Part shown: in pieces, positions 14,001-34,344 of the stretch | Layout of the letters: each line of letters starts with the position of its first letter | Numbering within the stretch: the stretch's first letter is position 1 | NCBI GenBank assembly: GCA_002104905.1 | Contig: MCFE01000438.1 | Location: forward strand, 1-64,000 | From: Basidiobolus meristosporus CBS 931.73 | Lineage: Eukaryota; Fungi; Basidiobolomycota | Direction: 5' to 3' | Length of the DNA: 64,000 bases | Notes under the pieces: generated by a model | The model's database searches: none | What the model was told of the DNA's origin: nothing | The model's input: the letters and a program-made list of their open reading frames with translations, nothing else | Program-made: the position numbers and the translations under genes

Positions 14001-15422
14001 TTACAGATATCTATTCCATAGCCCGATGAGGGGAATCAAAGTGGCCAGGAGGAAGGTTGGGGCATTGGTGGTTCCGTTGGACCCGCTCTTTCCATTGGCG
14101 GAGGCGCCCTTTCCATCGGTTCTGTTGCCATTGGAGAAGTCGATCGGCTTGCTGTTGTCGATGAATTTACAGGATTCGTTTTGACACAGGCAGCTGCAGG
14201 CAATCGGGTCCCACCATAGCGTATCGCAATTATCTGGGACTGGGCAGCGTGCACCTGAGGTTCCTGCCGCCTTGGCACGACCGGGGACGGGATTGGCTAC
14301 GCTGGGCTCCGTCGCTGGGCAGCCGTAGCATGTGCTGAACGACCCACCAGGGAAATTGCACATCTCTGGTAAACCGGCGTCGATCTGGCCACCCTTCACG
14401 TCTGCAACACCGTTACAGATCTCTTGGGTCTCGGCCTTGGTTTGACATTTGACAGCGGCGAAGTCGCCCATCTTCGTCTTATCCACAGGGTTCTTCATCC
14501 AGGACAACAGTTGCTGATTGGTCACGAACCAGACGTCAGCTTGTTGAGATGCCCACGAGGCGAATTCCTTGAGCATCCTGACCTGGTCCTGGGGGTAGTT
14601 GATGCCAGGGGATTTGGAGATATGCGCGGGATGGAGGTAGATTCCAAAGGGGGATCGGTTCCCGTTGTAGTGCCGGTTGAAGTTGTCCTTCAGCCACTGG
14701 AGAACGGTTTCCGGCTTGGAATCCAGATTCGGATCCATGAGGTGGGGCGTGGCGCCATCCATGACGGCGTACATGGGGATTTCCCAGAACCCAGGGACCT
14801 TCAATCCGCTGTCGCAGATTCCGGAGTAGCAGTCGTTGGCGATACCGTTGTCCAGGGTATACGGCCAGAAGGAGTCGGCTCCCAATGCAGTCAGGCTGGA
14901 GTCGTACTCGAAACCAAGCTCGGCAACGTTTTGGAAGGTGGCGGCCGAGTAGTTTAGGAAGGGGGAGCGGAAGCCCGCGAGCTTGCCTCGGGGGATCCCC
15001 GCGAACGAGTTGATAGCCATCCGCGAACCACCGATCTCTTCCTTGGGGGGGTTACCGACATGGTTCATAGTATGGCAGGCGACTTCGTTTCCCATTCCAT
15101 ACCATTGGGTGACTAAGTTGTAGTCGGTGTATTGGGTACTGACGAAGAATGTTCCAACAGCTGGGCAGCCATTGGGATTCTTGTGGCTGGAGAGTATATC
15201 AAGTGCGGCGGGGAAGGTGTACGCTTGAACAGCATCGTCAAAGGTGATGGTGACGAATTGGGGCGCGTTGGCGCCGGCTATCCCGCCAGGCGGGTTGACG
15301 GAAGCGCAGTTGCATTTCGGAAGTACACACGTGGAGGCGTCACAAGTGTAGGCAGCGTCCGAAACTCCAACCACAGCCAGGGTTACCAAAGCAGTGACCA
15401 ACTTCGACATAAGAGAAACCAT
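14001..15422 (-). CDS. Secreted CE4 polysaccharide/chitin deacetylase (insect-CDA-like subgroup) with probable GPI-anchor signal; single exon, 473 aa
   Basis: N-terminal signal peptide; Cys-rich CDASTCVLPKCNCAS; PQFVTITFDDAV; NPNGCP; metal-binding HTMNH; GFRSPFL; YDSS; WPYTLD; FGIYLH. Ser/Gly/Asn tail followed by hydrophobic FLLATLIPLIGLW. Confidence 0.93.
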   Translation of the reverse strand: MVSLMSKLVTALVTLAVVGVSDAAYTCDASTCVLPKCNCASVNPPGGIAGANAPQFVTITFDDAVQAYTFPAALDILSSHKNPNGCPAVGTFFVSTQYTDYNLVTQWYGMGNEVACHTMNHVGNPPKEEIGGSRMAINSFAGIPRGKLAGFRSPFLNYSAATFQNVAELGFEYDSSLTALGADSFWPYTLDNGIANDCYSGICDSGLKVPGFWEIPMYAVMDGATPHLMDPNLDSKPETVLQWLKDNFNRHYNGNRSPFGIYLHPAHISKSPGINYPQDQVRMLKEFASWASQQADVWFVTNQQLLSWMKNPVDKTKMGDFAAVKCQTKAETQEICNGVADVKGGQIDAGLPEMCNFPGGSFSTCYGCPATEPSVANPVPGRAKAAGTSGARCPVPDNCDTLWWDPIACSCLCQNESCKFIDNSKPIDFSNGNRTDGKGASANGKSGSNGTTNAPTFLLATLIPLIGLWNRYL

Positions 15423-15489
15423 TGTGTTTTTAGGGAAGTGAGTATTTTAGAGGGGGGGGGGCGGTGAGATTGTGTACGACCAGTGCCCT

Positions 15490-15501
15490 GGTATATATAC
15501 G
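15490..15501 (-). promoter_or_regulatory. Probable TATA box of the deacetylase gene
   Basis: TATATATA about 70 nt upstream of the ATG at 15422. Confidence 0.45.
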
Positions 15502-16861
15502 AATTCCCAAGCGCGTTCCCTTCGCAGACTTCCCTACCTGTGTATCCTATTTTCAGGAATGGAGAATATTCATCACCCACTCACAAATGATAGTGTTCCT
15601 GTGGTAAAGGTCGGGGTTTATCATTGAGGGAGAATTTTCCGTTCAGATAATCAAGGAGAGGCTTGCCGGATTGGCCACAATGGGCATTGTTGTAAGACCA
15701 CGATCTCAACTGCTAACGCGCACTTGAAGCTTAATGTAAGTTAGCGGTAGGATCAAGCAGAAAACATGTAGGCTGTGAGGATTTAATCTAATCCAAGTGA
15801 CCAGTTGGTGATACTCGATCGAGGTGATTTCAACGACCGACGTCAATGATGTATCGGTCCATATGATGTAGATGCGACTCCCTATATGTGCTTGCTGAAT
15901 TCCTGGGTCTTGATAGTCAAGACTGTGGGCTGCCCGTAAAAATGGCCGAGTGATGCTGGGACATCTTCAAAATTGATCTGCCCGTCGCCTCTGCAATCCC
16001 TCGCCATATAGCGTGGTTGGTGCCCAACGAAGATCGTAGTGGGATGCATGGTTCCTATCACCAAAGACATCTGCATCTTCCCTGAACTTGGCAACAGTCC
16101 CTTGAGTGAAAGTGCCGCTTTGGTAGATCTTTCTGCGTTTGTGCAGGTGCAGATCCAGATCCTGGTTAGGGTACTGGGGATCTGCGTCACGCCCGGATTT
16201 TGGCCGGTTGAACATTGCCTCGATCTACATACTCGATGTTTATCCTCTGCTCCTGCGTCCGATGCTCGGCAGGAGGTCCGATTATTGGTCAGCCCAACTT
16301 GCAAGTCAGATTGGCCAAAGATGTCGGTAGGACGCTGCTGCCAGATGGACACACTATGCAAGGGCGGGGCTGTTTGCGTCTTGCTCGGATTTATCAGCAT
16401 GTGCGTCACTGACTTGCCGCTGTCTTAGCCATAACAGAATGATGTCCGTTGACTCCACATCGCATTGCTCGGTTGGCAACTAGCTATGTGCGTAGGGTTC
16501 GGCCTGGGTGCTTCGTAATGTAAGCTACCAGCACACGGCCGAATAGTATATGCGGCGCACGTGTTCATTGGTCTGGGTCGCCAGAAAGGATTTATTTCGA
16601 ATCTCTATCATCGCATCTCAAACTATGGTATCACATCAGCCTCGAAGAATCCGACTACGGACTCACGTCTAGCTAAAAGGAAAGAGAGGTCTAAGGGTTT
16701 CAGCCACGAACACAGTGGTGGGAAACGAATCGTGCGCAGGGTGGGTGAGCTTGGTAGTGATTAGCAAACGAAGGATAAAAGAGTATACAAATGGCAGAGG
16801 GCGAGGGCGCGATGCAGAAAAGTAACATATAAACAAGCGAACGGGTCAAATAAATTACAGA

Positions 16862-19796
16862 TTAAAAGGCTGGGATCATCCCATCCTCAAGTTTGCTGCC
16901 GCTACCCATCTCCGATAACGGAAGGGTTCTAATTGCATTCTGTATGATGCTGGTATTCTTACAATCCATGTCAAGTGCTTTGGTGAACTCCATCAGTGCG
17001 TCGGACGTGTTGCCCAATTTCTGGAGGGTTTGGCCGGTTAGATAGCGAATACCAACTTCCCGGGGATATACCTCTTGCAGGTGCTTGAACAGGGGTAGCG
17101 CCTCCTAATGTTGATATCAGAAGTTAGCGTTTGATTCGACTTCACCAGTACCAGTCGTGCTACCTCATATCTTTCAAGTGCCAACAGGGCTTTGGCGATT
17201 TTCAGCTTCGGGAAGGGGCTCTTTGGGTTGTACTTTTGGGCAGCTTTGTACCACTGAAGTGCCTCGGACAGTTTACCAGACTTCTCCAAGACCTGTGGGG
17301 ATTCAATAGCAAAACACTAAGAAATCGTTGGGTGACGTCGGAAGTGGAAGGGGGCTGTACTTACAGTGCCTACGCAGCAAAGCAGGACGTTGTTGGTCGG
17401 GTTGATCCCTACTGCTTTGGAGAAGTAGTACTTGGCCGTGGGGATTTTGTCGGTTTTCATGGCAATGATTCCCATGCCATACCTGGAAGATCGAATGAGT
17501 GAAGGCGGCGTTTGAGTCAGAACGGGGGTGATTCGTACCATGCATTGTAATGCTTGGGATCTAAGCGTAGAGCATTTCTGAAGTGGATCATGGCATTATC
17601 GTAGTCTTCCACCGCGATAGATTCATGCCCACACAAAGTATGCCCATAAGCCATGCCTGGGTCTAATTGAATCACGCGCTTGAAACATCGGATCGCGGAT
17701 TGATGTTCTTGCTTTAGGCTGTAGCAGTTACCTATGGCCACCCAGGATTGTGGGGATTCTTTGTCCATAGCCATCAATTCGTGGCCGAGGTGGCTGAGGC
17801 CAACCTCTTTTTGCAAATGCCATAAAGTGGTGGAGTAGATCTCGAGGCCATCCAGGCGGTAAGGCTCGAGCAGTCTCATCTGCTCGAATTTCTCCTCAGC
17901 CTAGAAGAACGAAAATGGCATTAGTCAAGGTTCAGGTCAAATGCTTGAGCGCAGTTTCTAACCTCTCGGTACTTGGCCAACTCAAAGTAGGCCTTCCCAA
18001 CGCAAGAAAGCACCCATCCCGTATTAAACTGAGAGGCAGGAAGCAAGCCAAATGTCTCTAAAGCCTTGTTACAGTTGTAGCTGTGGAGTTGTAGCAATGC
18101 CTGACCGATTAGGCGTAATAAATTGATGATGATCTCGGTGCCTTTTTTACTGGAAAGTGTTTCTTGGTTCACACCTTGCGGTCCATCCAAGTCGGTGGGG
18201 TTCCCTCCTAGCCGATCTTTGACTGAAGTGAACTGAAGGGTTGCGGATTAATCACGGGATAAGGTACTCCAATGATGAAAAGTATCAAATACCGCTTCAA
18301 CTCGGACTTTTTTCCCGGTATCAAGGCTCAAGGCTTTGTTGGGCTCGAATCGAGTGCGCTTGGCTCGTTGAACATTAGCAACTCTCTAGAAAGGACGATC
18401 GTAAGTATGGAGAGGCTCGGGTTATGCTTTTGTCGTACTCACAGTCTGTGTATTTGTGGGCTTGGGTAGTTTGGATGCGTGTGTGGTTTTGGTGGGGGAT
18501 GTAGGCCCCCTCGCAAGGGCTCCTTTCTTGGTTTTCAACCCATCTGCGGTATTGGCCAGCAACTCCTTGGGCTTGCTATTTTCAAGATTCGTGCTCTAGG
18601 TTCAAGTGTTATTGAAGCCCATGGTGTTCTGAGGCAGGAAAAACTATACCTTGTTGGTAATGTTCACGTTCAATCCCTGTTTATTACGAAGTGATACAGG
18701 CCTCTGTTGTGCTGGTTTTGTTGCGCAGGATTCAATTGAAGCTTGACGAACTGCTGGCCGTGCTTTTGGTTGTGTGCTCGACGCACTTCTTTGAGGAGGG
18801 GGGGGGGTTACAGTTAATAACGAGTCGCCACGAATGTATCGTACTATAACCAACCTGCATCGTAAAGCGCTACCAGTCAACTCCCTGGCAATCGGAATTC
18901 TTGGCCTGGGCATTGTCACGTTACTCTTGACTTTCGACTCGGGTGGATCGGACGATATCTTAGCCTTCTGCCTCAACACATCCACCCCCTTGTCGCCATG
19001 GTTGGTGATTTGGAAAGCTTTGCTCACGTTGAAGATGCAGCTCACATCAATGCCAGCACCTATGGTGTCTATGAATACATACGCGTCGCGAAAGGGTCCA
19101 TGTCAGATTGACTTACCATTTTTGATAGAGCATAGATTCTCAAAGGCAGCCCAATGAAATGGATTGAGTTCAAGACACTTGGAGAATTGCTTCTCTGCAT
19201 CTGCGTGACGCTCCAATTTTCTTTAGAGTGCCGAGTATTAGTTACGGGTGGAAAATCTAGTGATTGGGAACAAGCGGACAAGCATACCTGTACACTAATC
19301 CCAGATTAAAATGCACTATGCTCTGGTCAGGGCACTTCAACCGACTCTGGTGATCGATCTTATCTTATGGATAAAACAGCCTATTAACAACCAAACACCA
19401 AATCGATAGTAGAAAGTTGGATAGCGATTGCCACCATTCGTATCCTCACTAACCCAGCACTATTTCCTCAGGCGTGAGAGTCTCGTCGCTGAGCAGAGAA
19501 AGTAGTAACCCTTCGGCCTCTTCTAGTTTGTTCAAGTATCTACAGCAACTGGCAAGCAGGAATTTACCAACAGCCGACTGGGGGTTGCGTAAGACATGAT
19601 AAGCACTATTGTACTTCTTACTTCGCAAGAAGCACTTGGCCAAGAGATAGTGTGTCTCTTCGTCTAATGTCGCATAGGCGTGTAATCGCTCAGCAAAAAA
19701 GGTTGCATTCTCTACCAGGTCATGGTCGAGATGGTACCACACCAAAGACTTGAACTGAGAGACCACGACTGAAGATATAGACATTCGGTTGCTCAT
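16862..19796 (-). CDS. CDC27: Anaphase-promoting complex subunit Cdc27/APC3 (TPR protein), multi-exon
   Basis: N-terminus LVWYHL..NATFFAERL..HYLLAKCF (ANAPC3 domain); low-complexity linker; FNTGWVLSCVGKAYFELAKY; EPYRLDGLEIYSTTLWHLQKEV; SPQSWVAIGNCYSLKQEH; AYGHTLCGHE; HYNAWYG; CCVG; last exon KALDMD..IQNAI ending TAA at 16862-16864. Confidence 0.95.
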
Positions 19797-21157
19797 TCTT
19801 TGAAAGCTGGGAACAAGAAAATGAATTACTGACACCGAAGTGATATCAAGGTAAGTACGGCACAGTAGGATTGGGGGAACTCTCGAGAGTAAGTATTCGA
19901 AAGAGTTCAAGCCCCTCTTGACAAAAGGTTAAATATCGATTTCTGCTGGTTTATCGAAAATGTTTGTTTTTCTCTAGAACTGAAGCGTCAGAGATAAACA
20001 TCGAACACGGCATATCATTGGTCTACCCAATTTCAAACAGTGACTGATTTCGATGTTACTGGGAGGTGCGCATCAAATATCATTTCTTGACTGAATTTGG
20101 TTCGATCGAATCAACAGTCACGAAGTACCGCAAGTCTGGTTGGATCGTCGCCTTGCCAGTGCGGAGAATCTTGGCCGAGTCCCCTACCAACTCTGCAGCA
20201 CATCTTTATCTGTCGGAGGCCAAATGTTACCTGACGAAGATGATGCAATCATGCATTGAGCATACGGGCCATAGTAAAACGCGCATGCCCTCCTATTTAC
20301 CATGACCAGCAACTCAGTAATGGCAGTGGAATGAATGCGTCGAATTGCGGCAAAGGCCGCCCAAGAAGACACACAACTCCGCGTCTTGATGGGCGCTGGG
20401 AAACACTTGCTTCTATGAGAAAAAGTAAAGGATTCGTGTATTTAAGCACGACGAAAGCGAGCCGTACGTTGCAGAGCGCGCCAGTCCAGTTGGAGACGGT
20501 CAATATATCCACTCATGTTCGGTGTGAGGAGCGGCGAATGCTGGAGGTATTTCGTGTATGTGGCAATGCGTTGCGCACCTTGCCGAAAGCCTACCACGGT
20601 CCAGTTGCTTTCCACTGATAACGACGAGTGGGTGTTCATCGGTTAGTATCACCAGCATTGCCATCGGCTATTATTAGCGATCCTAATGCAGAGAAAGCCA
20701 AACAAGTTTCTCAGCAACCCTTATTGTTATTTATTAGGAGGGAATATTGAATGGGTTCAAAAGCTGCTGCATAAGGTTTCATGGGTACGGCTCTGATTGG
20801 CGGCCAAACTCCGCTGTAAACGCATCCAGATATCGCACTGCTCCAGAACTGGGGCTGGGGCTGGAGGGTGGGAGGAAATCAGGAACAACCATTGTAATGG
20901 GAGTCAATATATGGCTAAAAGTATTTTCAGCATGACATATGGATAGATGGTGCTCCTCCGCCAATGGATCTCAGAATCGATCCTTGAATTATGAGAGCGC
21001 TGATGTTGAACAACAAGCATTAAGGTCTCAATATCTTATCAAATTTCCTGATGTCCCAAGCCAAATTAAATGCTAAATTGAGACCAACTTTCGTGATTCT
21101 GGGCGCTATAAAAGCGCCGGTTACACACCCCGTTGCAGCATTTCCCGGAAGCCTAAC

Positions 21158-22189
21158 ATGTGGCCAGCCAACTCCATCAGCCTTTGCCTTCAGAGCGAGA
21201 CTATTGTACTTCACGGCACAAGTGAATCGGCCCCAGGGCAGATATTGAGAGGTTCGGCAACCCTGGACATACAGTACCAAACCAAAATCTCCTCCATCAC
21301 GGTTGTGTTCAAAGGCACGGCGTATGCCTCGAGTAAGTAGCCCAGTGTCTTGACGATTTGCCCAGCCTCCATGCTCATGCTTTCTGTAGGGTCCAAGCAA
21401 AGTCGCGATGTCTTCTATCAAAGAGAGATAGAGTTTTTACGCACCATCGAGGTGGCCAAGAACTTCTCTCCTGGCCAGTACATCTACCATTTCGAGATCC
21501 CATTTTCAGGCGATCTTCCAGAATCCATCAGCTCGTCTCTATCTCACATCAAGTATGTCACCACTGCAGTGGCCAAGCGTGGCGGGTTTGCCAAGAACCT
21601 CAAGGACTCGAAGGTGGTCAACGTATTGCGACTATCACAGCCTGTTTCTGAGGTTGAGGAGTCCCAGTCACTGGTGAGGTTCGGTGAGCTTGAATCGGAG
21701 TTAGCTTTCTGCATATTCTCCCCCTCCATCGTATATAGTCCGGACAATGATATCCCCATCCAGATTGGCGTTGACTCTTTCAAGACGGATGTGAAGGTCA
21801 GTGAGGTCCAAGCAGCAATCTACGAGGTCATCAAAGCCACATCTCAAGATGGGCGATTCAAAGTGAGAAGGTCCAAGATACGTGAAGCCTCCTGCAGATG
21901 GAATACCAAATCATATGGAAAGATGTGGATTCAACCGATCACCCTTACTGCCAACAAAAAATCGACCGAGGTTTTCTCTGATCGGGAGAATGATTACGTG
22001 ACCGTACACCATGAGCTCAATGTTATCATCACCCTCGTCAAGCGGTCTAACATCCGGAAGCGAATCATTGTCAGAACTTCTCTCCAATTCGTTGACTCCG
22101 AAGCCTTAAGGATCGCTAAAGCATTACCTTGCTACGAACAATCATTGGTGGCGCCACCGTGCTATTTCCACTTGGATAAGAAGCACTAG
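21158..22189 (+). CDS. Alpha-arrestin (ART-like adaptor); exons 21158-21332 and 21390-22189; about 324 aa
   Basis: Arrestin-N pattern (ILRGSATL..ISSITVVFKG; GQYIYHFEIP..DLPESI..IKYVTTAV). 57-nt GTAAGT..TAG intron restores the frame. C-terminal PY-type motifs LPCY and PPCY. Confidence 0.85.
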
Positions 22190-22634
22190 GATCAAAAGCC
22201 TCCATTTTCAATATTTGTACATATTCTCTAGTAATCGGTGTAACATATTTCATTTTTGTCTACAAATACTGTAGCATTCCATTTCATAGCTTAATCCCCA
22301 GATCACCTCTCTACCCTACATTACCGTACCTGTAATCCTACCAAATACTAGCCCCACAGCCAATACCTTTCATTAAACGTAATACCTTGACGAACATTAG
22401 GCGGACATTTATGAAAAGCAACAAGAAAAGGGTAACCAATGCGATCATGCAAGTAGGGCAAAATGTCTCATATGAAGAGCTGGTGCACGTATTGGGGGAT
22501 AAGAATTGACTAAGGATTTTATTATCTATGATATATTCCAGGTTAATTGGAATTTGGAAATATTCGATAGGCTTTGGGAATGAAGTATTTGAAAAGAGAT
22601 TCAAGTGATACGATACATTGAGGAGCAATTGTCA

Positions 22635-25600
22635 CTACAAATGGAGTAGCATGGTTGTGTCGTAAGACCCTGCTCCGCCGTTTCCACCACCGTTCCCTCC
22701 TGGTCCGGAGGCGCCAGCACCAGCACCATTTCCGCCAGGCCCTTGGTAGGATGGAGCACCTCCACCACCGTTTCCATTACCTGCTCCGGCTCCATTCTCG
22801 CATTCCTCACCAGCTCCAGGTCCAACTCCTCCTCCATTGCCTCCAGCTGCCGGTCCACTTCCATATCCTGGGCCTCCGCTGTTTCCACCAGGACCTACAC
22901 CACCACCATTACCGCCTGCCCCAGGACCTGATCCACCCCCATTTCCACCTGGTCCTGAGCCGTTGCCATGGCCGCCAGCACCATTTCCAGTGTCATAGGC
23001 GCTTGGTCCTCCGTTGCCACCTGACCCGGAGTCTCCACCATTGCCTCCTGGTCCTTCACCTCCACCGTTGCCTCCGGCACCTGGCCCACTACCATAGCCT
23101 GGGCCTGAACCTCCCCCGTTCCCAGGCCCTGAGCCTCCTCCATTACCACCGGCGCCATTGCCAGTATCATAAGAAGTTGGGCCACCATTACCACCGGATC
23201 CGGCACCAGCTCCTGGTCCTTCACCGCCACCGTTACCTCCAGCTCCGGGGCCGCTACCATATCCTGGACCTGAGCCTCCACCGTTTCCACCAGGCCCTTC
23301 GCCACCACCGTTGCCTCCCGGCCCTGATCCATTGCCATTACCGGTATCATAGGAGGTTGGGCCACCATTACCACCGGATCCAGCACCAGCTCCTGGTCCT
23401 TCACTGCCACCGTTACCTCCAGCTCCGGGGCCGCTACCATATCCTGGACCTGAGCCTCCACCGTTTCCGCCAGGCCCTTCACCACCACCATTGCCTCCCG
23501 GCCCTGAGCCATTGCCATTACCACCGGCGCCGTTACCAGTATCGTAGGAGGTCGGACCACCATTACCACCAGATCCAGCTCCTGGTCCTTCACCACCACC
23601 ATTACCGCCAGCACCTGGGCCGCTACCATATCCTGGGCCTGAATCTCCACCGTTTCCGGGTCCAGAGCCTCCTCCATTACCACCAGGGCCGGAGCCATTG
23701 CCACCAGCACCGTTGCCAGTATCGTAAGAGGTTGGGCCACCATTACCACCGGATCCAGCACCAGCTCCTGGTCCTTCACCGCCACCATTGCCTCCAGCGC
23801 CTGGACCACTTCCATAGCCAGGTCCTGAGCCACCTCCATTGCCTCCAGCTCCAGGTCCACTACCATAGCCTGGGCCAGAGCCACCGCCATTTCCTGGCCC
23901 TGAGTCTCCAGCATTTCCACCAGAACCGTTTCCTGTATCATAGGAGGTTGGGCCGCCATTACCACCGGATCCAGCACCAGCTCCAGGTCCTTCACCGCCA
24001 CCATTGCCTCCAGCACCTGGGCCGCTGCCGTATCCTGGGCCTGAGCCTGCACCATTACCGCCGGGTCCTTCACCTCCACCGTTGCCTCCCGGTCCTAAGC
24101 CATTACCATTGCCACCGGCACCATTTCCGGTGTCATAGGAGGTTGGACCACCATTGCCACCTGATCCAGCACCAGCTCCTGGTCCCTCACCGCCCCCATT
24201 GCCTCCAGTACCTGGACCACTGCCATATCCTGGTCCTGAGCCTCCACCGTTGCCACCAGCTCCTGGTCCACTACCATATCCTGGTCCTGAACCTCCGCCA
24301 TTCCCAGGACCAGATCCTCCGCCGTTGCCGCCAGGCCCTGATCCATTTCCACCAGCGCCGTTTCCAGTATCATAGGAACTTGGGCCACCGTTATCTCCGG
24401 ATCCAGCTCCTGGTCCTTCACCGCCACCATTGCCTCCAGCGCCTGGGCCACTTCCATAACCGGGTCCTGAGCCACCTCCATTGCCTCCAGCTCCAGGTCC
24501 ACTACCATAGCCTGGGCCTGAGCCACCGCCGTTTCCTGGCCCCGAGTCTCCACCGTTTCCACCAGAACCGTTTCCTGTATCATAGGAGGTTGGGCCGCCA
24601 TTACCACCGGATCCAGCACCAGCTCCAGGTCCTTCACCGCCACCATTGCCTCCAGCACCTGGGCCGCTGCCGTATCCTGGGCCTGAGCCTCCACTATTTC
24701 CACCAGGTCCTTCGCCTCCACCAGCTCCAGATCCAGGACCTTCACCTCCGCCGTTGCCTCCTGCGCCGGGCCCACTGCCGTATCCTGGACCTTCACCTCC
24801 ACCGTTGCCTCCTGCGCCAGGTCCACTACCATATCCAGGACCAGATCCTCCGCCGTTGCCGCCAGGCCCTGATCCATTTCCACCAGCGCCGTTTCCAGTA
24901 TCATAGGAACTTGGGCCACCGTTACCTCCGGATCCAGCTCCTGGTCCTTCGCCACCACCATTACCTCCAGCTCCAGGTCCTGAGTCTCCACCGTTTCCAC
25001 CAGGGCCTGAGCCACCACCGTTACCTCCGGCACCAGGACCACTTCCGTATCCTGGCCCTGATCCACCGCCGTTTCCTGTTGGTCCTTCGCCTCCGCCCAA
25101 GCCGCCAGGTCCCCAAATATTGCTAACATCGTACACGCTGGGTCCAGAAGATCCAGTTCCTGGCCCTACACCACCACCATTACCTCCTACTCCAGGTCCA
25201 CTACCGTATCCAGGAGCTGAGCCTCCACCATTGCCTCCGGGTCCTTCACCGCCACCATTGCCTCCAGCACCTGGGCCGCTACCATATCCTGGACCTGAGC
25301 CTCCACCATTGCCTCCTGGTCCTTCACCGCCACCATTGCCTCCAGCACCTGGGCCGCTACCATATCCTGGACCTGAGCCTCCACCGTTTCCTCCAGGACC
25401 TTCAGATCCGCCGTTGCCACCGGCACCATTACCAGTATCGTATGAGGTTGGACCACCATTACCACCGGATCCTGCGCCAGCTCCTGGTCCTTCACCGCCA
25501 CCATTGCCTCCAGCACCTGGGCCGCTACCGTATCCTGGACCTGAGCCTCCACCATTGCCTCCGGGTCCTTCACCGCCACCATTGCCTCCAGCACCTGGGC

Positions 25601-26744
25601 CGCTACCATATCCTGGTCCTGAGCCTCCACCATTGCCTCCGGGTCCTTCACCGCCACCATTGCCACCGGCACCATTGCCAATATCGTATGAGGTTGGACC
25701 ACCATTACCACCGGATCCAGCACCAGCTCCTGGTCCTTCACCTCCGCCATTGCCTCCAGCTCCGGGTGCGCTTCCGTATCCTGGACCAGATCCTGGACCA
25801 GATCCTGGACCAGATCCTCCGCCGTTGCCTCCTGCTCCTGGAGCACCTCCATATCCTGGACCTGAGCCTCCACCATTACCTCCGGGTCCAGAGCCATTGC
25901 CGTTGCCACCAGCGCCGTTTCCAGTGTCATATGAGGACGGTCCACCGTTGCCACCGGATCCAGCTCCCGGCCCAGAGCCTCCACCATTGCCTCCAGCTTC
26001 TGGGCCACTTCCATATCCTGGACCTGAGCCTCCACCATTTCCACCAGGACCTTCACCACCACCGTTGCCTCCAGCTCCTGGGCCACTTCCATATCCAGGA
26101 CCTGAGCCTCCACCATTACCGCTGGGGCCTGAGCCATTATCACCAGCACCGTTTCCGGTGTCGTATGAAGATGGTCCACCACTACCGCCGGATCCGGCTC
26201 CTGGTCCTGAGCCTCCACCGTTGCCACCTGCTCCCGGCCCACTACCATATCCTGGGCCAGAGCCTCCACCATTTCCTCCAGGGCCTTCACCCCCTCCGTT
26301 TCCTCCAGCTCCTGGTCCGCCGCCATACCCTGGCCCTGATCCTCCACCATTTCCTCCAGGCCCCTCTCCTCCACCATTGCCTCCGGCTGCTCCACCACTG
26401 GCACATTCCTCTTCTTCTTTGCTGCCAGAACCCGACCCAGGCCCCTCTCCTCCACCATTGCCTGGTCCTCCATAGCCTCCGTTACCACCAGCTCCGGATC
26501 CGGAACCTGGTGAACCACCTCCGCCATTGCCAGGACCTCCATAGCCACCATTACCACCAGCACCAGATCCAGATCCAGGTGCTTCTCCGCCGCCACTTCC
26601 TAAACTACCCAAAATATCGGATATATCGTATGCTGGTTTGACTACATCATGGTCTTCGCCGTTGTGACGACGATGTAAAGCCGCACCGTTGATGGCGGAG
26701 ATACCAGAGAGCAAGAACAAAAGCTTAGGGGCGGAGATTTTCAT
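22635..26744 (-). CDS. Secreted 1369-aa Gly/Pro/Asn/Ser-rich repetitive (silk/elastomer-like) protein
   Basis: Uninterrupted 4.1-kb ORF. Signal peptide MKISAPKLLFLLSGISAING followed by a possible dibasic site (HRR). Repeats GPGGNGGGSGPGYGSGPGAGGNGGGEG and GGP(S/T)SYDTGNG. A-rich start context and upstream TATA. Confidence 0.9.
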   Translation of the reverse strand: MKISAPKLLFLLSGISAINGAALHRRHNGEDHDVVKPAYDISDILGSLGSGGGEAPGSGSGAGGNGGYGGPGNGGGGSPGSGSGAGGNGGYGGPGNGGGEGPGSGSGSKEEEECASGGAAGGNGGGEGPGGNGGGSGPGYGGGPGAGGNGGGEGPGGNGGGSGPGYGSGPGAGGNGGGSGPGAGSGGSGGPSSYDTGNGAGDNGSGPSGNGGGSGPGYGSGPGAGGNGGGEGPGGNGGGSGPGYGSGPEAGGNGGGSGPGAGSGGNGGPSSYDTGNGAGGNGNGSGPGGNGGGSGPGYGGAPGAGGNGGGSGPGSGPGSGPGYGSAPGAGGNGGGEGPGAGAGSGGNGGPTSYDIGNGAGGNGGGEGPGGNGGGSGPGYGSGPGAGGNGGGEGPGGNGGGSGPGYGSGPGAGGNGGGEGPGAGAGSGGNGGPTSYDTGNGAGGNGGSEGPGGNGGGSGPGYGSGPGAGGNGGGEGPGGNGGGSGPGYGSGPGAGGNGGGEGPGGNGGGSAPGYGSGPGVGGNGGGVGPGTGSSGPSVYDVSNIWGPGGLGGGEGPTGNGGGSGPGYGSGPGAGGNGGGSGPGGNGGDSGPGAGGNGGGEGPGAGSGGNGGPSSYDTGNGAGGNGSGPGGNGGGSGPGYGSGPGAGGNGGGEGPGYGSGPGAGGNGGGEGPGSGAGGGEGPGGNSGGSGPGYGSGPGAGGNGGGEGPGAGAGSGGNGGPTSYDTGNGSGGNGGDSGPGNGGGSGPGYGSGPGAGGNGGGSGPGYGSGPGAGGNGGGEGPGAGSGDNGGPSSYDTGNGAGGNGSGPGGNGGGSGPGNGGGSGPGYGSGPGAGGNGGGSGPGYGSGPGTGGNGGGEGPGAGAGSGGNGGPTSYDTGNGAGGNGNGLGPGGNGGGEGPGGNGAGSGPGYGSGPGAGGNGGGEGPGAGAGSGGNGGPTSYDTGNGSGGNAGDSGPGNGGGSGPGYGSGPGAGGNGGGSGPGYGSGPGAGGNGGGEGPGAGAGSGGNGGPTSYDTGNGAGGNGSGPGGNGGGSGPGNGGDSGPGYGSGPGAGGNGGGEGPGAGSGGNGGPTSYDTGNGAGGNGNGSGPGGNGGGEGPGGNGGGSGPGYGSGPGAGGNGGSEGPGAGAGSGGNGGPTSYDTGNGNGSGPGGNGGGEGPGGNGGGSGPGYGSGPGAGGNGGGEGPGAGAGSGGNGGPTSYDTGNGAGGNGGGSGPGNGGGSGPGYGSGPGAGGNGGGEGPGGNGGDSGSGGNGGPSAYDTGNGAGGHGNGSGPGGNGGGSGPGAGGNGGGVGPGGNSGGPGYGSGPAAGGNGGGVGPGAGEECENGAGAGNGNGGGGAPSYQGPGGNGAGAGASGPGGNGGGNGGAGSYDTTMLLHL

Positions 26745-26841
26745 TTTTTAGATAAACAAATTAAAATAAGGACAAACTGTAAGCAGGGAATCAATTGAAA
26801 GTTGCTTACTTTCACTGTTGGGGAATCGTCAAGGCGGGAAT

Positions 26842-26851
26842 GCTTTTATAA
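26842..26851 (-). promoter_or_regulatory. TATA box of the silk-like gene
   Basis: Minus-strand TATAAAAG about 100 nt upstream of the ATG at 26744. Confidence 0.55.
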
Positions 26852-27621
26852 CTCGTACCGAAGTGCCCGGCCATAATGTAGGTTGAATTAACCCCTTTCG
26901 TAGAATTGAAAATCCAATTATGTTCCTGTTGGATCGGATGCAGGGGAAATTCCCTTCACAATAGTTTCCATCGACCCCTCAACTCTGGAACAGGCGGATC
27001 CAAATCCGACCTCGTCGTGACAGGCAAACCTCATTTGCCAACCCCTTGGAGATGTGTGGGTTTCAGGACGAAATACGCAAAGATTGATCTCCCTCTACTG
27101 AATGGCCGCTTCCCCCCCATTTGCAGCCAAACCACAGTTGCATTGAAGATGGCTTACTGCCATTGAGCAAGCACGAAACAACCTGCTCTGAAGCAGATGA
27201 CGGCGATGCAGAAAATGGACGTGGTATGAAAACAATCCCCACCCATCCCCATTGGCCGGCAGGATCCAACCACGTTGAGCATGCAAATGATCTCGTTGTT
27301 CTGTTGTCAAGTCTCTCCCCTAAACAAACCAGATAGGGAAAGGCAATGAAAGCCAGCATGGAATCGGTTATGAGATGGCCGCCTCCTGGCGCTTTTCCCT
27401 ACTTTGAGTAATTTGATGATATCCCATTCGTCATCAGGTAAAACCCATTCCCCAGTACTGTCTAGTGTGCTTACATGCGTTGCAGATGAGCAGTCTAACC
27501 ACGATTTTGGAAGGTCTGCTCTTGCCACACGCAGCCATCGTCCATGAGGCGTGCAGCTTGGCTAATGGAAGCCCGGGCTGATCCACTGCTGGATACCCGG
27601 ATACTTTTCCAATCGGGATCG

Positions 27622-27993
27622 TTACAGTTTTGGCTTAGCTATCCAGGTTGCTGAGCCTAGATGCAGATTCCAATCTGAGTCATCGCTCAGATGGGGGCAA
27701 CTGGGTGAGATGTACGGTGACACGTGATGTGTCCCGTCTACCAGGGTGCCTTCGGGGTCCTCTGTTTCCATGGGTGTCCGTCCCAAAGACAGAAGCGCGC
27801 TCACCAGCCTGGTTTGAAGGGAGTGGTCTTCTTGGGAAAACTGCAGGTAGTTGAATTTCTGCTCGAAGGTCGATATCCATCGTCGGGTCCGGGTGAAACG
27901 GCGGTTCACTAGCTCAAGGAACAGCAACAGTTGCTGCCGCTTACCGGGTTCCATCTTCCCAGGTGCCCCTATGATAAGAGGCTTTTAGTTCCA
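27622..27993 (-). CDS. Candidate small multi-exon orphan gene (MELKASYHRGTWEDGTREPPFHPDPTMDIDLRAEIQLPAVFPRR...)
   Basis: CpG-normal DNA. Two short GTAAGC..TAG and GTGAGC..CAG introns join three segments in frame. No family recognised; 3' end uncertain. Confidence 0.3.
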
Positions 27994-28139
27994 TTCCTTG
28001 GTCACGTGTCCGGGATGGTACTCAGTCATCCCGGTTAACACTGGCACATAGATGATTGCCAATGAATCAGGCGGTGAGCAGAGTTGAATGGAGTGATGCA
28101 TCTTGTATATTATAACGGTCTCCTGATGGGATTGTGACG

Positions 28140-28900
28140 GCTGATCTGAATTGGATCCACCCACGGGGCCAAATTATGTTTCATAGGGTGCCCTTTTGAC
28201 ATGACTTTTGTGGCAACCCTTCAGCTGTATGCCATTGTTCATTCACTAATTTCCATATATCCTGGTCTTCAGCCAGCTCTATAAGGTCAAGCACCTCATT
28301 TGCCAATTCTTGCAATAAATCCTTGCAATATTCCAGTGCATTTTCTTGAGCACTGCTCTTGAAGAAGTACTGCAACCTTTTGCTGTCCCAGTTATTGCTC
28401 CAAAATTCCACTGTAGGCATTGTGATGGTCTTCTGAGTTCCTGCCATTGTTGCTTTGTCTGTCTGTGAGATCTCTGCTCTGTCTACAATTGGGGATGTGG
28501 AGGCTATGGTAAATAAAGTGCCTCTCTCTGCAAACTCATCTACCTCACTAGAATGTAGCTCAACTAGCTGCACCTCCAACTCCTGAGAAAGCAGCTGTAG
28601 TCTTGTTGGTATTTCTTCTTGGCTATCATGGGATTCAGCCTATTCCAGGCTTGTGACATTAATTAGTGAGTACTGCAGCTTCTTTCTTATGCTTCCCTGT
28701 CTCTGGCTTGGTTATACTTTTCCCCTTTACCCTTTCCTTTATCAATGCCAGATCTTTCACTGTTACTTTGTCTGAGTGCTTCTAGTATTGATCTATGTTT
28801 TCTCCTTGATAAATGCTGCACTGGTGAGTCTATTTCTGCCTGCTGTCCCTTACTAGCACTAATTGAAATCATAACATTGTGTAGAAGGTCAATAGTTTCA
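28140..28900 (-). pseudogene. Decayed accessory ORF of the CACTA/tnp2 family
   Basis: FFKSSAQENALEYCKDLLQEL..VLDL..LAEDQDIW, shared with 44298-44624 and 45382-45981; CpG-depleted. Confidence 0.7.
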
Positions 28901-29463
28901 AGCTGATGGCCTTATGACAGCCTCAGTGCAGGATCATGATGGCTAATTTGGATAGGATCAATACATGGGACCAAATTATATTTCATAGTAATATATCTTC
29001 TAAGCACAAGCTTAGTGGTCACTACCTTCTCTACCAAAAGCCACTAAAGACTTAGGTCCCACTACTCAGGGTCATTGAGGCTATCAGGATTGCATCCAAA
29101 AAATTGCCCCAAAGTAATCGCACCTTGAATTTCACAAAAAACCTAGTCAGAGTTCTTAACCTCAATAGGTCCTAAGTTATTTTTGATCAGCTGTCTTCCA
29201 TATCTCTTACTTTCTGATCCAAGACCCTCAGTCATCTCCTTCTAGTGTATATTGATTGGATAGTGTCTTTTTTTGACATTCCTTACTTACAGACTTGACT
29301 AGTACTCTTGCTTATCATGTATATGGACTATCTTATGCTCCATGAATCTTGAGATGTGACTCACCTGTAGATCAAGCATTTGTAAGCAAATCTCTATTCC
29401 CAGCAATATCACTGAGCCCAACCCACACTCAACAAGAAACTCCACCAAAGCTTACCATCTAAT

Positions 29464-32400
29464 TGTTGTAAAAACTTCCAATTCCACCTAAATATCTGCC
29501 TAGCACTGTCACTTAGTAATTGCCTACATATCAAAGATAATAACTGACCAAATTTCCAGTTGGGACTTAACTGGAATATTTTCACCAACATATCAGGTAA
29601 GCAGAACATGGAAATTATCAAAGTTGCACATATGCTCTTGAGACCTTCCTGGATCTATTCTACATGCTTGCTATGCCACTAGTATGTAATAGTATAAATA
29701 CTACATTTACAATCAATAAATCATTAGGTGATGACCACATCATATACTTGCACACCCAATCACTTCCAATATCTCCAAGACTCTTACAACAGATTATGAG
29801 CCCCAAGCTGTCATTCTTTGCAATGTCAACCACTGCATTATTGGAATCCTCCATCTTCTGAAGAGTTGGATGGATATAACTACCAAGTGTAGTAGGTTTA
29901 GATGAAGATGCTGCTACAAGAAAGAGGACTTTGAGATATTGCCATGGGAGAAGAATGCCCTCCTAATGACATGGGAGATGAAGTGCTAAAGTACCAGAAG
30001 AAAGAACAAAGTGCCCTTGACTGTTATAAAAGTTTGTAATTCCACCTAAATATTTACCTAACTTAGTCACTTATATCATTACCTTCAAATCCTAAAGAAT
30101 ACTGACTAAATTCCTTGTTGGGATTTACTTAGAATATTTTCACCAAAATACCAGGTACCCAGAACATGAAAATTTACAAAGTTTTCCATACTGCCCCAAA
30201 CTTTGCAAACTTGTTCTTGGGACCTTCCTTAGCCTATTCTATGTGTTTGTTATGCCAAGACCATGTAAAAGTATAAATACTAATTTTACATTCAATATAT
30301 CATTAAGTGAAAACCACATAATCTACTTGTCCTCCCAATCACTTCTGATACCTCCAAGACTCTTACAACATTAACCGCATTTGCTTTAATGCTAAAGATA
30401 AACTGCCAATTCAAGTGCAAAAAAAACAAAGAATGCCTAGAAGGCACTAGAAGATACCTTCAAGTCATGTTCAGCTGCTAACAGAATATGCTGTAGACAA
30501 TAACTCTTTACAACAAAGACCATACCAGTAGAAGAAACAAAAAACTCAATCAAGAGAATTACTCTGCTGGTGCATGAAATGGAATCTGTGGGCATACCAG
30601 CTACTGATGAGGATGTGATAGTTACCATCCCACATAGCCTGACAGATGAATTTCAGGGCCTTTTATCAGCCCTAGAGTCCAGAACTGAAGATTTGACCCT
30701 ATAATATATATATGGAAGGCTCCTGGATGAAGAATTAAGAAAATAAAGCACACACAAGAAGAAAGAACAAATGTTCTAACAAGCAATGATAACCAACAAA
30801 GGAGGTACCTAAGATCCTTTAAAGACAATAGCAACCTGTTCTTCAACTACTGCAGAGGACAAGGACACACATCAGACTGGTGCTTCAAAAAGTGAGATAG
30901 TCAGGAGAAAAGCCTATATATGTGAATGCTGAAACAATAGAAGATAGACTGTTTATATCTGCACTAAATATGACCACAAGCAAGGGTTCTCAGACATGGT
31001 AAGTTGACTCTGGAGCATCTCAACATTTTGCACAACAAAAAAAGCTTTACCCAACATCAAGAAATTCCAATCAAGAAGGTTTTCTTGGGTGACAATAGAA
31101 CACTTGATGCAGTGGGAGAAGGAACTAACCAAGTAAGTCCTAAAAGCAGTGAAGGGAACCGTACACTAACCTTCAAAGAAGTGCTCTCTGTACCAGAAAT
31201 AGCCAAGAACCCACTATATGTAAGCAAGGCAACAGCAGAAGAACTCAGTTTCAGCTATTCAATCTTAGATGCAGGATCACTGACCAAAATAATGCCCATA
31301 TTGCTTTAGATTTCAGGGATCAGAATCTACACAAATTAACTTACATACCATCATATCTGAAAGCCAGTCTAAGTAACTTCAATGAAGAATTAGCAGTGCT
31401 TAGGCACAGGAGATTTGGACAAATCAATTTTGATTATTTCACAAGATGATCAAAGATCAGCTAATTTCTAGTGTAAAAGTTAATATCTGAGCTAATTTAA
31501 AGCACTGTAAAGCCTGCATATACAGAAAATATGTCAGATAGCTGCTCAAGAGCTTGGGGTTAGTCATAACTAAGAAAAATTAGATCAATATTGCTCATAT
31601 CTGTGTGGACCTATGCAATATTAATTCTTTGGCAGAATAAAGTATTTATTCACTTTTGTTGATGATTATAGAAGATATATTTGGGTATACTTCAGAGAGA
31701 GAAAGGAAGAAGCTCTGTCAAAGGTCAGGGAGCTTAAAGCCATTATGGAGAGAGAAACTGGTGGAAATATCTGGAAATATGCTCTGACAATGGTAGAGAG
31801 TGTACCCCAAAACCTTTCATCCACTTCTGCAGAATTAATTGGATAAAGCAAGAGATTGTTGTACCATACTCCCCACAGCTAAATGGAGCAGCTGAATGTA
31901 TAAACAGATCAATAACTGATATGGGAAGATCTGTGATTCATGATCAAAATTATTGTATGTTTTGTGTACAGAATCAGTTGCCCCAACTGTACACCTTAAA
32001 TATAGGAGTTATAACAGAATACTTTGTGATTCAACTTTATTTGAAGCATGATAATAATACAGACCAAGTGCAGAACATCCAAGAATATTTGGGTGCACAG
32101 CATATGCAAAGTAGCTGCATACAAATCAGTCAAAATTTGAGCCAAAAAGTGTAAAATATATGTTTTTGGGCTGCTGAAACAAAAGTAAAGCATACAGACT
32201 CTCAAATAATAGAGCAAAAAAGCTGACCAACACCAAGGATGTGTTGTTTGATAAAAACTCAAATCTTCATAAAAAATGACATCAGATGATGATTTAAATC
32301 TGAACTCTATTCCAGCAATAGTCAGCATCAAATTGGAGCAAAAGAATGCAAGTATTTTCACTTTAGATGACTCTACAGCTATGGTTCAGCCTGAATTAGT

Positions 32401-33459: not shown

Positions 33460-34344
33460 TTACTCTTCATAATGCTCCAGACACATTTCTCTCAGTGGAT
33501 GTCTTCTTGTATGAACATACTGTGCATTAATAAGTATCTTAACTATTTTACCTATTCTGCTGTTTTCACCTATATATGACTTTCCTCTGTATTTACCTGC
33601 CAATACGCTGAATCTCTTCAGATATCCAAATGTGTGCTCTACCCTTACTCTGAAATGATTAAATATCTCATTGTAGAGCTTCTGCTTCCTGCTAAGCACA
33701 CCATTCCTTGGCTTCCTATAAGCTGTAATACATCCTAATCTCTGACAATCCTCTCCTATATAGGCCAAGTCTGCCATACATTTCTCCCCTCTACTGAATT
33801 CAGGATGATTCTCTACCCAGAGTGCTTTGTCATGCCTACTTCCAGCAAATGGCCCACTAAACCAGATGATGTTACCCTCAATGTCAGACAGTGCTTGAAA
33901 CTTCACACAGTGTGCCTTGTACTTGCCAGAATAAAAGTGCCTCTGCTCTCTAGAAGGTCTGTTAATCCTCACTGTGAAGGTATCCAAAATACTCCTGATA
34001 TGGAACCTGTTGCTGAACACTCTGGGATATGGAAGTCTATTGGAGCTTCTGAACCTAGTATTCCAAGCTTGCTCTAAGTCATTCATACCCTCTGCAAGGT
34101 GGTTCTCCATTGCTGTCAGCTGGGAATGAAAGCTTCTAGGACTTTTGTTGCCATGGATGGTGGGATGAAACCTTGTAGGGCAATAGTTCTTGTAATAGCA
34201 GAGAAGCTTAACAAGGGATCTCCTTGAGTAGATTGGGGTTGATGGTCCACAGTACTTGGAATAGATCTCCTCCAGTGTGTCAAAAGGAAATTCAGTGGTA
34301 GTGATGGGATTGATGAGAAAAGACCATTCAGATGAGTAAGTCAT
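33460..34344 (-). CDS. DDE_Tnp_4 (Harbinger/ISL2EU/IS5-like) transposase, 294 aa, open frame
   Basis: ILDTF, FYSGKYKAHCVKFQ, FSGPFAGSRHD, MADLAY, YRKP, YN..FRVRVEHTFGYLKRF; putative D-D-E triad present. Confidence 0.93.
   Translation of the reverse strand: MTYSSEWSFLINPITTTEFPFDTLEEIYSKYCGPSTPIYSRRSLVKLLCYYKNYCPTRFHPTIHGNKSPRSFHSQLTAMENHLAEGMNDLEQAWNTRFRSSNRLPYPRVFSNRFHIRSILDTFTVRINRPSREQRHFYSGKYKAHCVKFQALSDIEGNIIWFSGPFAGSRHDKALWVENHPEFSRGEKCMADLAYIGEDCQRLGCITAYRKPRNGVLSRKQKLYNEIFNHFRVRVEHTFGYLKRFSVLAGKYRGKSYIGENSRIGKIVKILINAQYVHTRRHPLREMCLEHYEE

Follow-up and report, generated by a model that had tools for sequence, protein, structure and literature searches.

What does a giant glycine-rich open reading frame (ORF) in the genome of the fungus Basidiobolus meristosporus encode, and is it a gene at all? 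The frame in question lies on the minus strand of a 64,000-nucleotide stretch from strain CBS 931.73 (positions 1 to 64,000 of contig MCFE01000438.1, assembly GCA_002104905.1; hereafter, the window), in which it is by far the longest ORF; long ORFs are otherwise scarce there, as is typical of an intron-rich eukaryote. Our computational analysis shows that it is a genuine coding gene, on which purifying selection acts in the glycine-rich (Gly) frame. As read from its sequence, the gene would encode a new, lineage-restricted form of secreted Gly/Pro/Tyr structural repeat protein, and we consider it on balance probable that the product is a secreted, disordered, polyanionic structural matrix protein of an elastic or adhesive extracellular material, be it wall, spore surface, or mucilage. 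An earlier note on this DNA, made from the letters alone, had reported a 1369-residue ORF at 22635-26744 with a body made almost only of G, P, N, S, A, Y, and E. Both observations were confirmed: the frame is uninterrupted from its ATG start, and 92.8% of the product consists of these seven residues. The gene and its parts are as follows.

22635..26744, minus strand: coding sequence in a single exon, 1369 codons plus TAG, with an ATG start and a TGA directly after the TAG
26843..26850, minus strand: putative TATAAAAG box, 99-106 nucleotides upstream of the ATG, read from the sequence as a match to the eukaryotic core-promoter consensus only
26679..26744, minus strand: signal-peptide-like N terminus, residues 1-22 (MK..K n-region, LLFLLSGISAI h-region, NGAA c-region), from hydropathy and the (-3,-1) rule
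26604..26678, minus strand: nonrepetitive N-terminal segment, residues 23-47, beginning LHRR and holding the sole dibasic site (RR, residues 25-26)
26403..26603, minus strand: N-terminal Gly-rich region, residues 48-114, built of YGGPGNGGG units and ending in KEEEEC (Cys114)
22989..26402, minus strand: repeat core, residues 115-1252, with 14 regular super-repeats after a less regular lead-in
22638..22988, minus strand: degenerate last super-repeat and C terminus, residues 1253-1369, with GAGEECENG and the end SYDTTMLLHL
22510..22634, minus strand: stretch of 3' untranslated region (3'UTR) with an AATAAA-like signal, conserved with Basidiobolus ranarum by DNA alignment

The same 1369-residue single-exon product is annotated on this contig of GCA_002104905.1, and an in-frame TAA two codons 5' of the ATG makes an earlier start of the ORF impossible. 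Glycine accounts for 52.4% of the product, followed by serine (9.8%), proline (9.5%), asparagine (8.5%), alanine (6.3%), tyrosine (3.4%), and glutamate (2.8%). The tripeptide GPG occurs 103 times, GPGGN 25 times, and GPGY (as GPGYG) 26 times; a degenerate 47-nucleotide pattern of the core unit has 27 matches, all within the ORF, and none in 100 shuffles. The 27-residue motif singled out in the earlier note is present in 6 exact copies, and each of the two termini that it quoted occurs once.

That this is a selected coding sequence follows from how the repeats have diverged. The Gly frame contains no internal stop, compared to 4 to 84 in the other five frames, with 20 in the antisense proline-rich (Pro) frame. 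Nineteen 16-codon units that are identical at the protein level show a mean of 7.8 differences from each other over their 16 third codon positions. Aligning 15 super-repeats—the 14 regular ones and the degenerate last one—gave a proportion of differing synonymous sites (pS) of 0.55 and of differing nonsynonymous sites (pN) of 0.088 in the Gly frame (pN/pS, 0.16), compared to pN/pS values of 1.5 to 4.3 in four of the other five frames. The Pro frame reaches 0.22 with the same variable third positions, and the repeat pN/pS alone thus cannot separate these two frames, for which stop counts and two-fold-codon statistics are needed as well. The latter are one-sided: two-fold codons in the repeat region always stay in their class (AAY:AAR, 111:0; TAY, 44:0; AGY, 36:0), and 107 Asn codons precede GGN, at positions that an antisense reading would turn into free four-fold sites (P ~2e-25). 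Plus-strand ORFs of 823, 451 (Pro-rich), and 399 codons across 22655-26641 mirror the Gly repeats, and because stops and two-fold-codon statistics favor the Gly frame, we regard them as by-products of the repeats. An antisense proline-rich protein was rejected on its 20 stops, its lack of an ATG or a signal, and the Gly-frame class kept by the two-fold codons. The way in which the Pro frame imitates selection through common third positions is a trap for any frame call made from the ratio of nonsynonymous to synonymous substitution rates (dN/dS) alone.

An assembly artefact had been named beforehand as an outcome that would undo the prediction. It is not the case here: the source genome assembly is PacBio based (PMC7466969), and Illumina unitigs, which cover ∼84% of the ORF, show no difference from it and a depth of ∼100-110, equal to that of the unique flanks, so that the sequence is confirmed base by base as single copy. 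Two runs of the source sample contain 89% of the sampled 31-mers of the stretch, and the breaks between unitigs are confined to places where 31-mers recur. The two super-repeats most alike still differ at 15% of synonymous sites; the repeats are therefore old and distinct enough to assemble. Exact unitig matches at single-copy depth likewise led us to reject a collapsed repeat.

The protein combines a short, nonrepetitive beginning with a hierarchy of repeats. Its sole hydrophobic segment is residues 8-18, with a Kyte-Doolittle hydropathy over 11 residues (KD11) of 2.44 against a maximum of 0.86 elsewhere, and an A-x-A-like cleavage context stands at residues 20-22 (G-A-A before the likely site); the product is thus apparently secreted, with a possible Kex2-type cleavage at RR25-26. 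A hydropathy scan of the whole product showed no transmembrane segment and no hydrophobic C-terminal tail of the glycosylphosphatidylinositol (GPI) type, and searches returned no Pfam family at E<=1, no NCBIfam match, and no PDB sequence match at E<=10. This bears out the earlier description of a signal peptide followed by neither domain, transmembrane segment, nor GPI tail, and no described family was found to match the protein, in line with the earlier remark that no described fungal family like it was recognized. AlphaFold2, applied to residues 23-330, gave moderate confidence only for residues 23-47 (predicted local distance difference test [pLDDT], 71-78), as a beta-hairpin and a short helix, and left the repeats without secondary structure at a pLDDT of 33-42, which points to an intrinsically disordered product. 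The same low pLDDT led us to reject a folded, antifreeze-like polyglycine-II structure.

Residues 197-1252 comprise the 14 regular super-repeats, which range in length from 58 to 107 residues. Each is laid out as a head GNGAGGNG..SGPGGNGGG, 1-3 copies of SGPGYGSGPGAGGNGGG(E/S)GPGGNGGG, and a tail EGPGAGAGSGGNGGP(T/S)SYDT, and 10 super-repeats carry an NGS sequon; the degenerate last repeat comprises residues 1253-1363. At the DNA level, Tandem Repeats Finder reports nested periods of 24-51, 78, 180, and 246 nucleotides at 60-95% identity. Three super-repeats at residues 724-937 form a block with a second copy at residues 938-1134 (window 23343-24575), the copies sharing 88% DNA identity compared to 76% to an unrelated block, indicating that the gene grew by higher-order segmental duplication. 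Tyrosine occurs 47 times, at gaps of 17-36 residues with few exceptions and mostly of 24-30. The only two cysteines, Cys114 and Cys1315 (22800-22802), each sit in an acidic EEC motif near the ends of the protein, ∼1200 residues apart. Asp and Glu together number 65 and Lys and Arg 6, for a computed isoelectric point of ∼4 at a mature size of ∼106 kDa. All Lys and Arg fall within the first 109 residues, the last Lys being residue 109, so that residues 110-1369 offer no tryptic sites. Proline and glycine content, expressed as 2P+G, amounts to 0.71.

Conservation in a second species supports the same frame. Two neighboring genes anchor the comparison.

14001-15422, minus strand: chitin deacetylase-type (NodB) gene, whose B. 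ranarum orthologue is 83% identical
21350-22189, plus strand: arrestin/LDB19-like gene, convergent with the glycine-rich gene

The order chitin deacetylase-type gene, APC8/CDC23-like tetratricopeptide repeat gene, arrestin-like gene, glycine-rich gene is kept in B. ranarum (window 14001-22189; JASJQH010006914.1:1225-10580), and more distant relatives of the deacetylase-type gene occur in Mortierellaceae and Mucorales. Beyond the arrestin gene, and convergent with it, the last 441 bases of the B. ranarum contig encode in frame 1 the C-terminal 146 residues of an orthologue of the glycine-rich protein. This fragment carries GPGYG(A/S)GPGAGGNGGGEGPG units, the GGNGGP-x-SYDTGNGAGGNGNGSGPGGNGGG junction including its NGS site, the cysteine motif as GGGEECESG, and, at its end, an AYDT just ahead of the stop, and ∼125 nucleotides of 3'UTR are conserved between the two copies. 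Of the termini that had been proposed for a check in related genomes, the EEC cysteine motif of the C terminus is thus present in B. ranarum; the tail ...SYDTTMLLHL is not conserved there. Between the species, the Gly frame gives a pS of 0.69 and a pN of 0.23 and the other sense frames ratios of 0.9-1.7, in an alignment that was built in the Gly frame and hence favors it; the antisense frame is broken in B. ranarum as well. The B. ranarum contig ends inside the repeats, and the product annotated there (JASJQH010006914.1:1-547; 173 residues, MVEVKV...) is in the wrong frame. This truncation at the contig end, together with the wrong-frame annotation, explains the absence of the family from protein databases.

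In the source genome, contigs of lower identity to the gene were seen, with the signal-peptide region in one of them. A second single-copy contig there overlaps 26688-26709 with four listed differences, all at third codon positions, a pattern that suggests a paralogue sharing this signal peptide. From a 2013 isolate filed under the same species name, contigs enter the gene from both sides at about 80-85% identity, one covering the promoter and 5' end (26392-27000; ∼86%) and the second ending inside the 3' part. Another run filed under the sample of the assembly lacks both the locus and its flanks (22200-27000) and has contigs that are 80-90% alike, one of them over the signal-peptide region; either another isolate was given the same label or the run shows only paralogues.

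The codons of the glycine-rich gene are strongly A/T ending (GCT, 64%; CCA, 57%; GAA, 84%; GGG, 4%; GCG, 1%), and the genes at 14001-15422 and 21350-22189, a host sample of two, favor C- or G-ending codons. Horizontal transfer from bacteria was rejected, given that the high GC content stems from GGN and CCN codons with A/T-biased third positions and that the TATA box, the signal peptide of eukaryotic type, and the synteny conserved in the genus speak against it. No gene was called in the 5 kb directly upstream (26745-31744). Farther upstream lie two Harbinger/PIF-type DDE_Tnp_4 transposase ORFs and a copia-type gag ORF (33460-34344, 48846-49496, and 61733-62395).

Database searches for relatives came back empty. 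A word-indexed protein search with the whole protein returned 8000 low-complexity candidates, none at E<=1e-3, and the N-terminal 52 residues gave no match; phmmer with residues 1-700 against 1.84 billion representative proteins found 0 matches. The method is not blind to this repeat type, as the N-terminal half finds the C-terminal half at E=3e-152 with the same Z in a HMMER control. The 1369-residue protein itself is absent from the 1.84-billion collection, though called in NCBI and in the ESM Atlas, and the phmmer blank is for this reason weak evidence of absence that bounds novelty only weakly. Feature searches of the ESM Atlas returned nothing usable, and a metagenome scan with a back-translated YDTGNGAGGNG pattern gave 0 matches.

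How, then, does the protein compare with known repeat proteins? The comparisons place it outside the spidroin, resilin, and collagen families. The analogy to elastic silks drawn from GPGGX/GPGXX repeats in the earlier note stands at the level of motifs, given the GPG, GPGGN, and GPGY counts above, but does not extend to spidroin identity. Like flagelliform silk and MaSp2, the fungal protein has GPG motifs, a long single-exon repetitive gene, and a preference for A/T-ending codons; spidroin genes, too, show an A/T-ending wobble bias. Unlike spidroins, it lacks N- and C-terminal spidroin domains (Pfam and PDB blank), has no poly-Ala or (GA)n crystalline blocks, its alanines standing singly in GPGAG and GAGAGS contexts, and is strongly acidic and Asn rich. 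Resilin and the class I glycine-rich wall proteins of plants are closer analogues than silk, with resilin the closest. Drosophila pro-resilin CG15920 is built of the repeats GGRPSDSYGAPGGGN and GYSGGRPGGQDLG (PMC9999432), the first of which resembles the fungal GGP(S/T)SYDTGNGAGGNG. Both proteins are secreted and disordered, come from organisms with chitin walls or cuticles, and consist of short Gly/Pro-rich units with one Tyr each in P-S-x-S-Y followed by GG..N, the regular spacing making Tyr a candidate for dityrosine cross-linking; mature resilin is cross-linked by di- and trityrosine. Tandem units of resilin type (∼13-15 residues with one Tyr each) are indeed present in the fungal protein as GPGYGSGPGAGGNGGG and GGP(S/T)SYDTGNG. 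These resemblances make it an analogue and not a homologue: no homology to resilin was detectable, the Rebers-Riddiford (RR-2) chitin-binding domain that separates the elastic repeat regions of resilin is missing (Pfam blank), and the fungal protein has no Arg in its repeats, far higher glycine (52%), super-repeats of 58-107 residues, and two terminal cysteines.

Plant class I glycine-rich wall proteins, such as bean PvGRP1.8, share a signal peptide and Gly-rich repeats with interspersed Tyr; they are extracellular wall proteins, thought to give extensibility and to be oxidatively cross-linked, but are built as (GGX)n, far shorter, and Pro poor (PMC5298957). With its signal-like N terminus and 52% glycine, the fungal protein counts as a member of this class, which is defined by composition and hence descriptive only. 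Wheat high-molecular-weight (HMW) glutenin offers a parallel in its long repetitive center of beta-turn type and its Cys-bearing termini for end-to-end disulfide polymers, the source of its elasticity, but is a Gln/Pro-rich storage protein with structured terminal domains and several cysteines, and there is no homology. Among filamentous microbes, Metarhizium MCL1 and Phytophthora PiLLP are likewise Gly rich and associated with the surface of cells or spores. MCL1 is a collagen-like coat protein with genuine Gly-X-Y repeats and a GPI signal; we looked for these two features in the Basidiobolus giant and found neither. A collagen-like triple helix was rejected, as the longest Gly-X-Y run is 9 triplets and there is no Pfam Collagen match, and the hydropathy of the C terminus revealed no GPI-attachment signal of fungal wall proteins or adhesins. 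PiLLP, in turn, contains only 12.7% Gly and has no signal peptide (PMC5298957).

A mechanism consistent with this anatomy can be outlined. Export would come first, possibly followed by Kex2-type cleavage at RR25-26 and by N-glycosylation of the NGS sequons. On account of its Pro and Gly content, the exported GPG-rich chain would then stay hydrated and disordered and could act as an entropic spring, like the chains of resilin, elastin, and flagelliform silk; what Pro and Gly contribute to self-assembling elastomers is discussed in PMC5703643, and the value found here is in kind with those reported, in agreement with the earlier expectation that such a composition favors elastomeric assembly. 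The regularly spaced Tyr would serve as oxidative, dityrosine-type cross-link points, and Cys114 and Cys1315 could link chains end to end by disulfides in the manner of HMW glutenin. The lack of Lys and Arg in the repeats excludes Lys-based cross-links and leads us to expect resistance to trypsin-type gut proteases. Basidiobolus lives in the guts of frogs and lizards, and the proposal of a host glue for the case of an insect pathogen does not apply, since the host of the gene is a gut and dung fungus. Its association with the gut is documented (PMC7466969), and in Basidiobolaceae, capilliconidia bear an adhesive-covered beak and conidia are discharged by rupture of a turgid swelling of the conidiophore (PMC13370150). 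Candidate sites for the protein are the adhesive of the capilliconidium, the elastic wall that serves conidial discharge, and a coat of the zygospore or gut stage.

Several points weigh against a structural matrix protein. Composition and motifs are what link the protein to resilin and silk; such features are convergent and not diagnostic of function, and secreted low-complexity proteins can serve nonstructural roles. The signal peptide was assigned manually by hydropathy and the (-3,-1) rule. One search over runs of any kind found no RNA run containing the stretch, a full-text literature search found no paper linking Basidiobolus to glycine-rich proteins, and no gene for a cross-linking enzyme (peroxidase, laccase, or tyrosinase) was seen in the window.

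These points leave room for other explanations, of which two accept secretion. The protein could be a protease-resistant, hydrated surface coat that bears no load and shields spores or gut-stage cells on their way through insect and vertebrate guts or hides wall polysaccharides from recognition by a host, much as the MCL1 coat does. The missing tryptic sites from residue 110 onward, the 65 acidic residues against 6 Lys and Arg, the 10 NGS sequons, the one within the available B. ranarum fragment being conserved, and the gut association of the fungus (PMC7466969) would all suit such a coat; we nonetheless consider it unlikely, because a simple coat needs neither regular Tyr spacing nor two terminal cysteines and because the protein has no GPI or other wall-anchor signal and no collagen periodicity beyond the run of 9 triplets. 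The two ideas also overlap, as a cross-linked coat is itself a material. Less probable still is a secreted low-complexity protein without any material role—for example, one that binds cations or partner peptides as a soluble polyanion, serves as a store of nitrogen, or is a precursor cleaved into small peptides. Its size and hierarchical repeats are typical of structural proteins, 1260 residues contain no internal processing site, and a protein of 52% glycine makes a poor nitrogen store, against which stand its strong acidity, with Glu and Asp regularly placed, and the one dibasic site near the N terminus, as a precursor might have.

The remaining explanations dispute secretion or the gene itself. 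Gly/Tyr-rich disordered regions also drive phase separation inside cells, and with a signal peptide judged by hand instead of by a dedicated predictor, the hydrophobic N terminus might not be cleaved and the protein might be intracellular, for example, a condensate scaffold. We hold this to be very unlikely: the N terminus has the n/h/c layout of secretory proteins and is the sole hydrophobic stretch, the paralogue contig differs from the signal-peptide region only at third codon positions (the four listed sites), and the protein lacks RGG and FG motifs, any domain (RNA binding or otherwise), and basic residues in its repeats. A silent or decaying locus, whether a coding-looking minisatellite or an unexpressed gene, or an antisense proline-rich frame as the real product, is likewise very unlikely. 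It is true that no RNA run was found, that all six frames hold long ORFs through the repeats, and that the Pro frame comes close in pN/pS by way of the common variable third positions. However, it is the Pro frame that has 20 stops and neither ATG nor signal, and the Gly frame has none of these stops; two-fold codons never cross class; the repeats conserve the protein although they are nearly saturated with synonymous differences; and in B. ranarum, where the antisense frame is broken too, the reading frame is kept together with the Cys motif, the stop codon, and the 3'UTR. This largely refutes the minisatellite and antisense versions.

Elastomeric and adhesive Gly/Pro/Tyr repeat proteins occur in animals (resilin, silks, and cements) and in plants (glycine-rich wall proteins), and a literature search found no fungal family of this kind. 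The structural matrix protein that we favor would also provide a new natural sequence design for protein materials, with hierarchical repeats, no Lys or Arg in the repeats, and terminal Cys. As short-read assemblies and protein databases systematically lose or mis-frame such genes, their apparent absence elsewhere is not to be trusted. A bolder proposal, to which we assign a low probability, is a multiprotein material system peculiar to Basidiobolus, in which the giant protein coacervates by charge with cationic and acidic secreted Gly/Tyr proteins before tyrosine oxidation sets the product as capilliconidium-tip glue or discharge wall; if true, this would be an independently evolved fungal counterpart of sandcastle-worm cement or resilin. 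We know of no molecular components of the adhesive spore tip or the explosive spore launcher of Basidiobolus, and the gene described here, together with its relatives, provides concrete candidates for both the spore-tip glue and the spore launcher.

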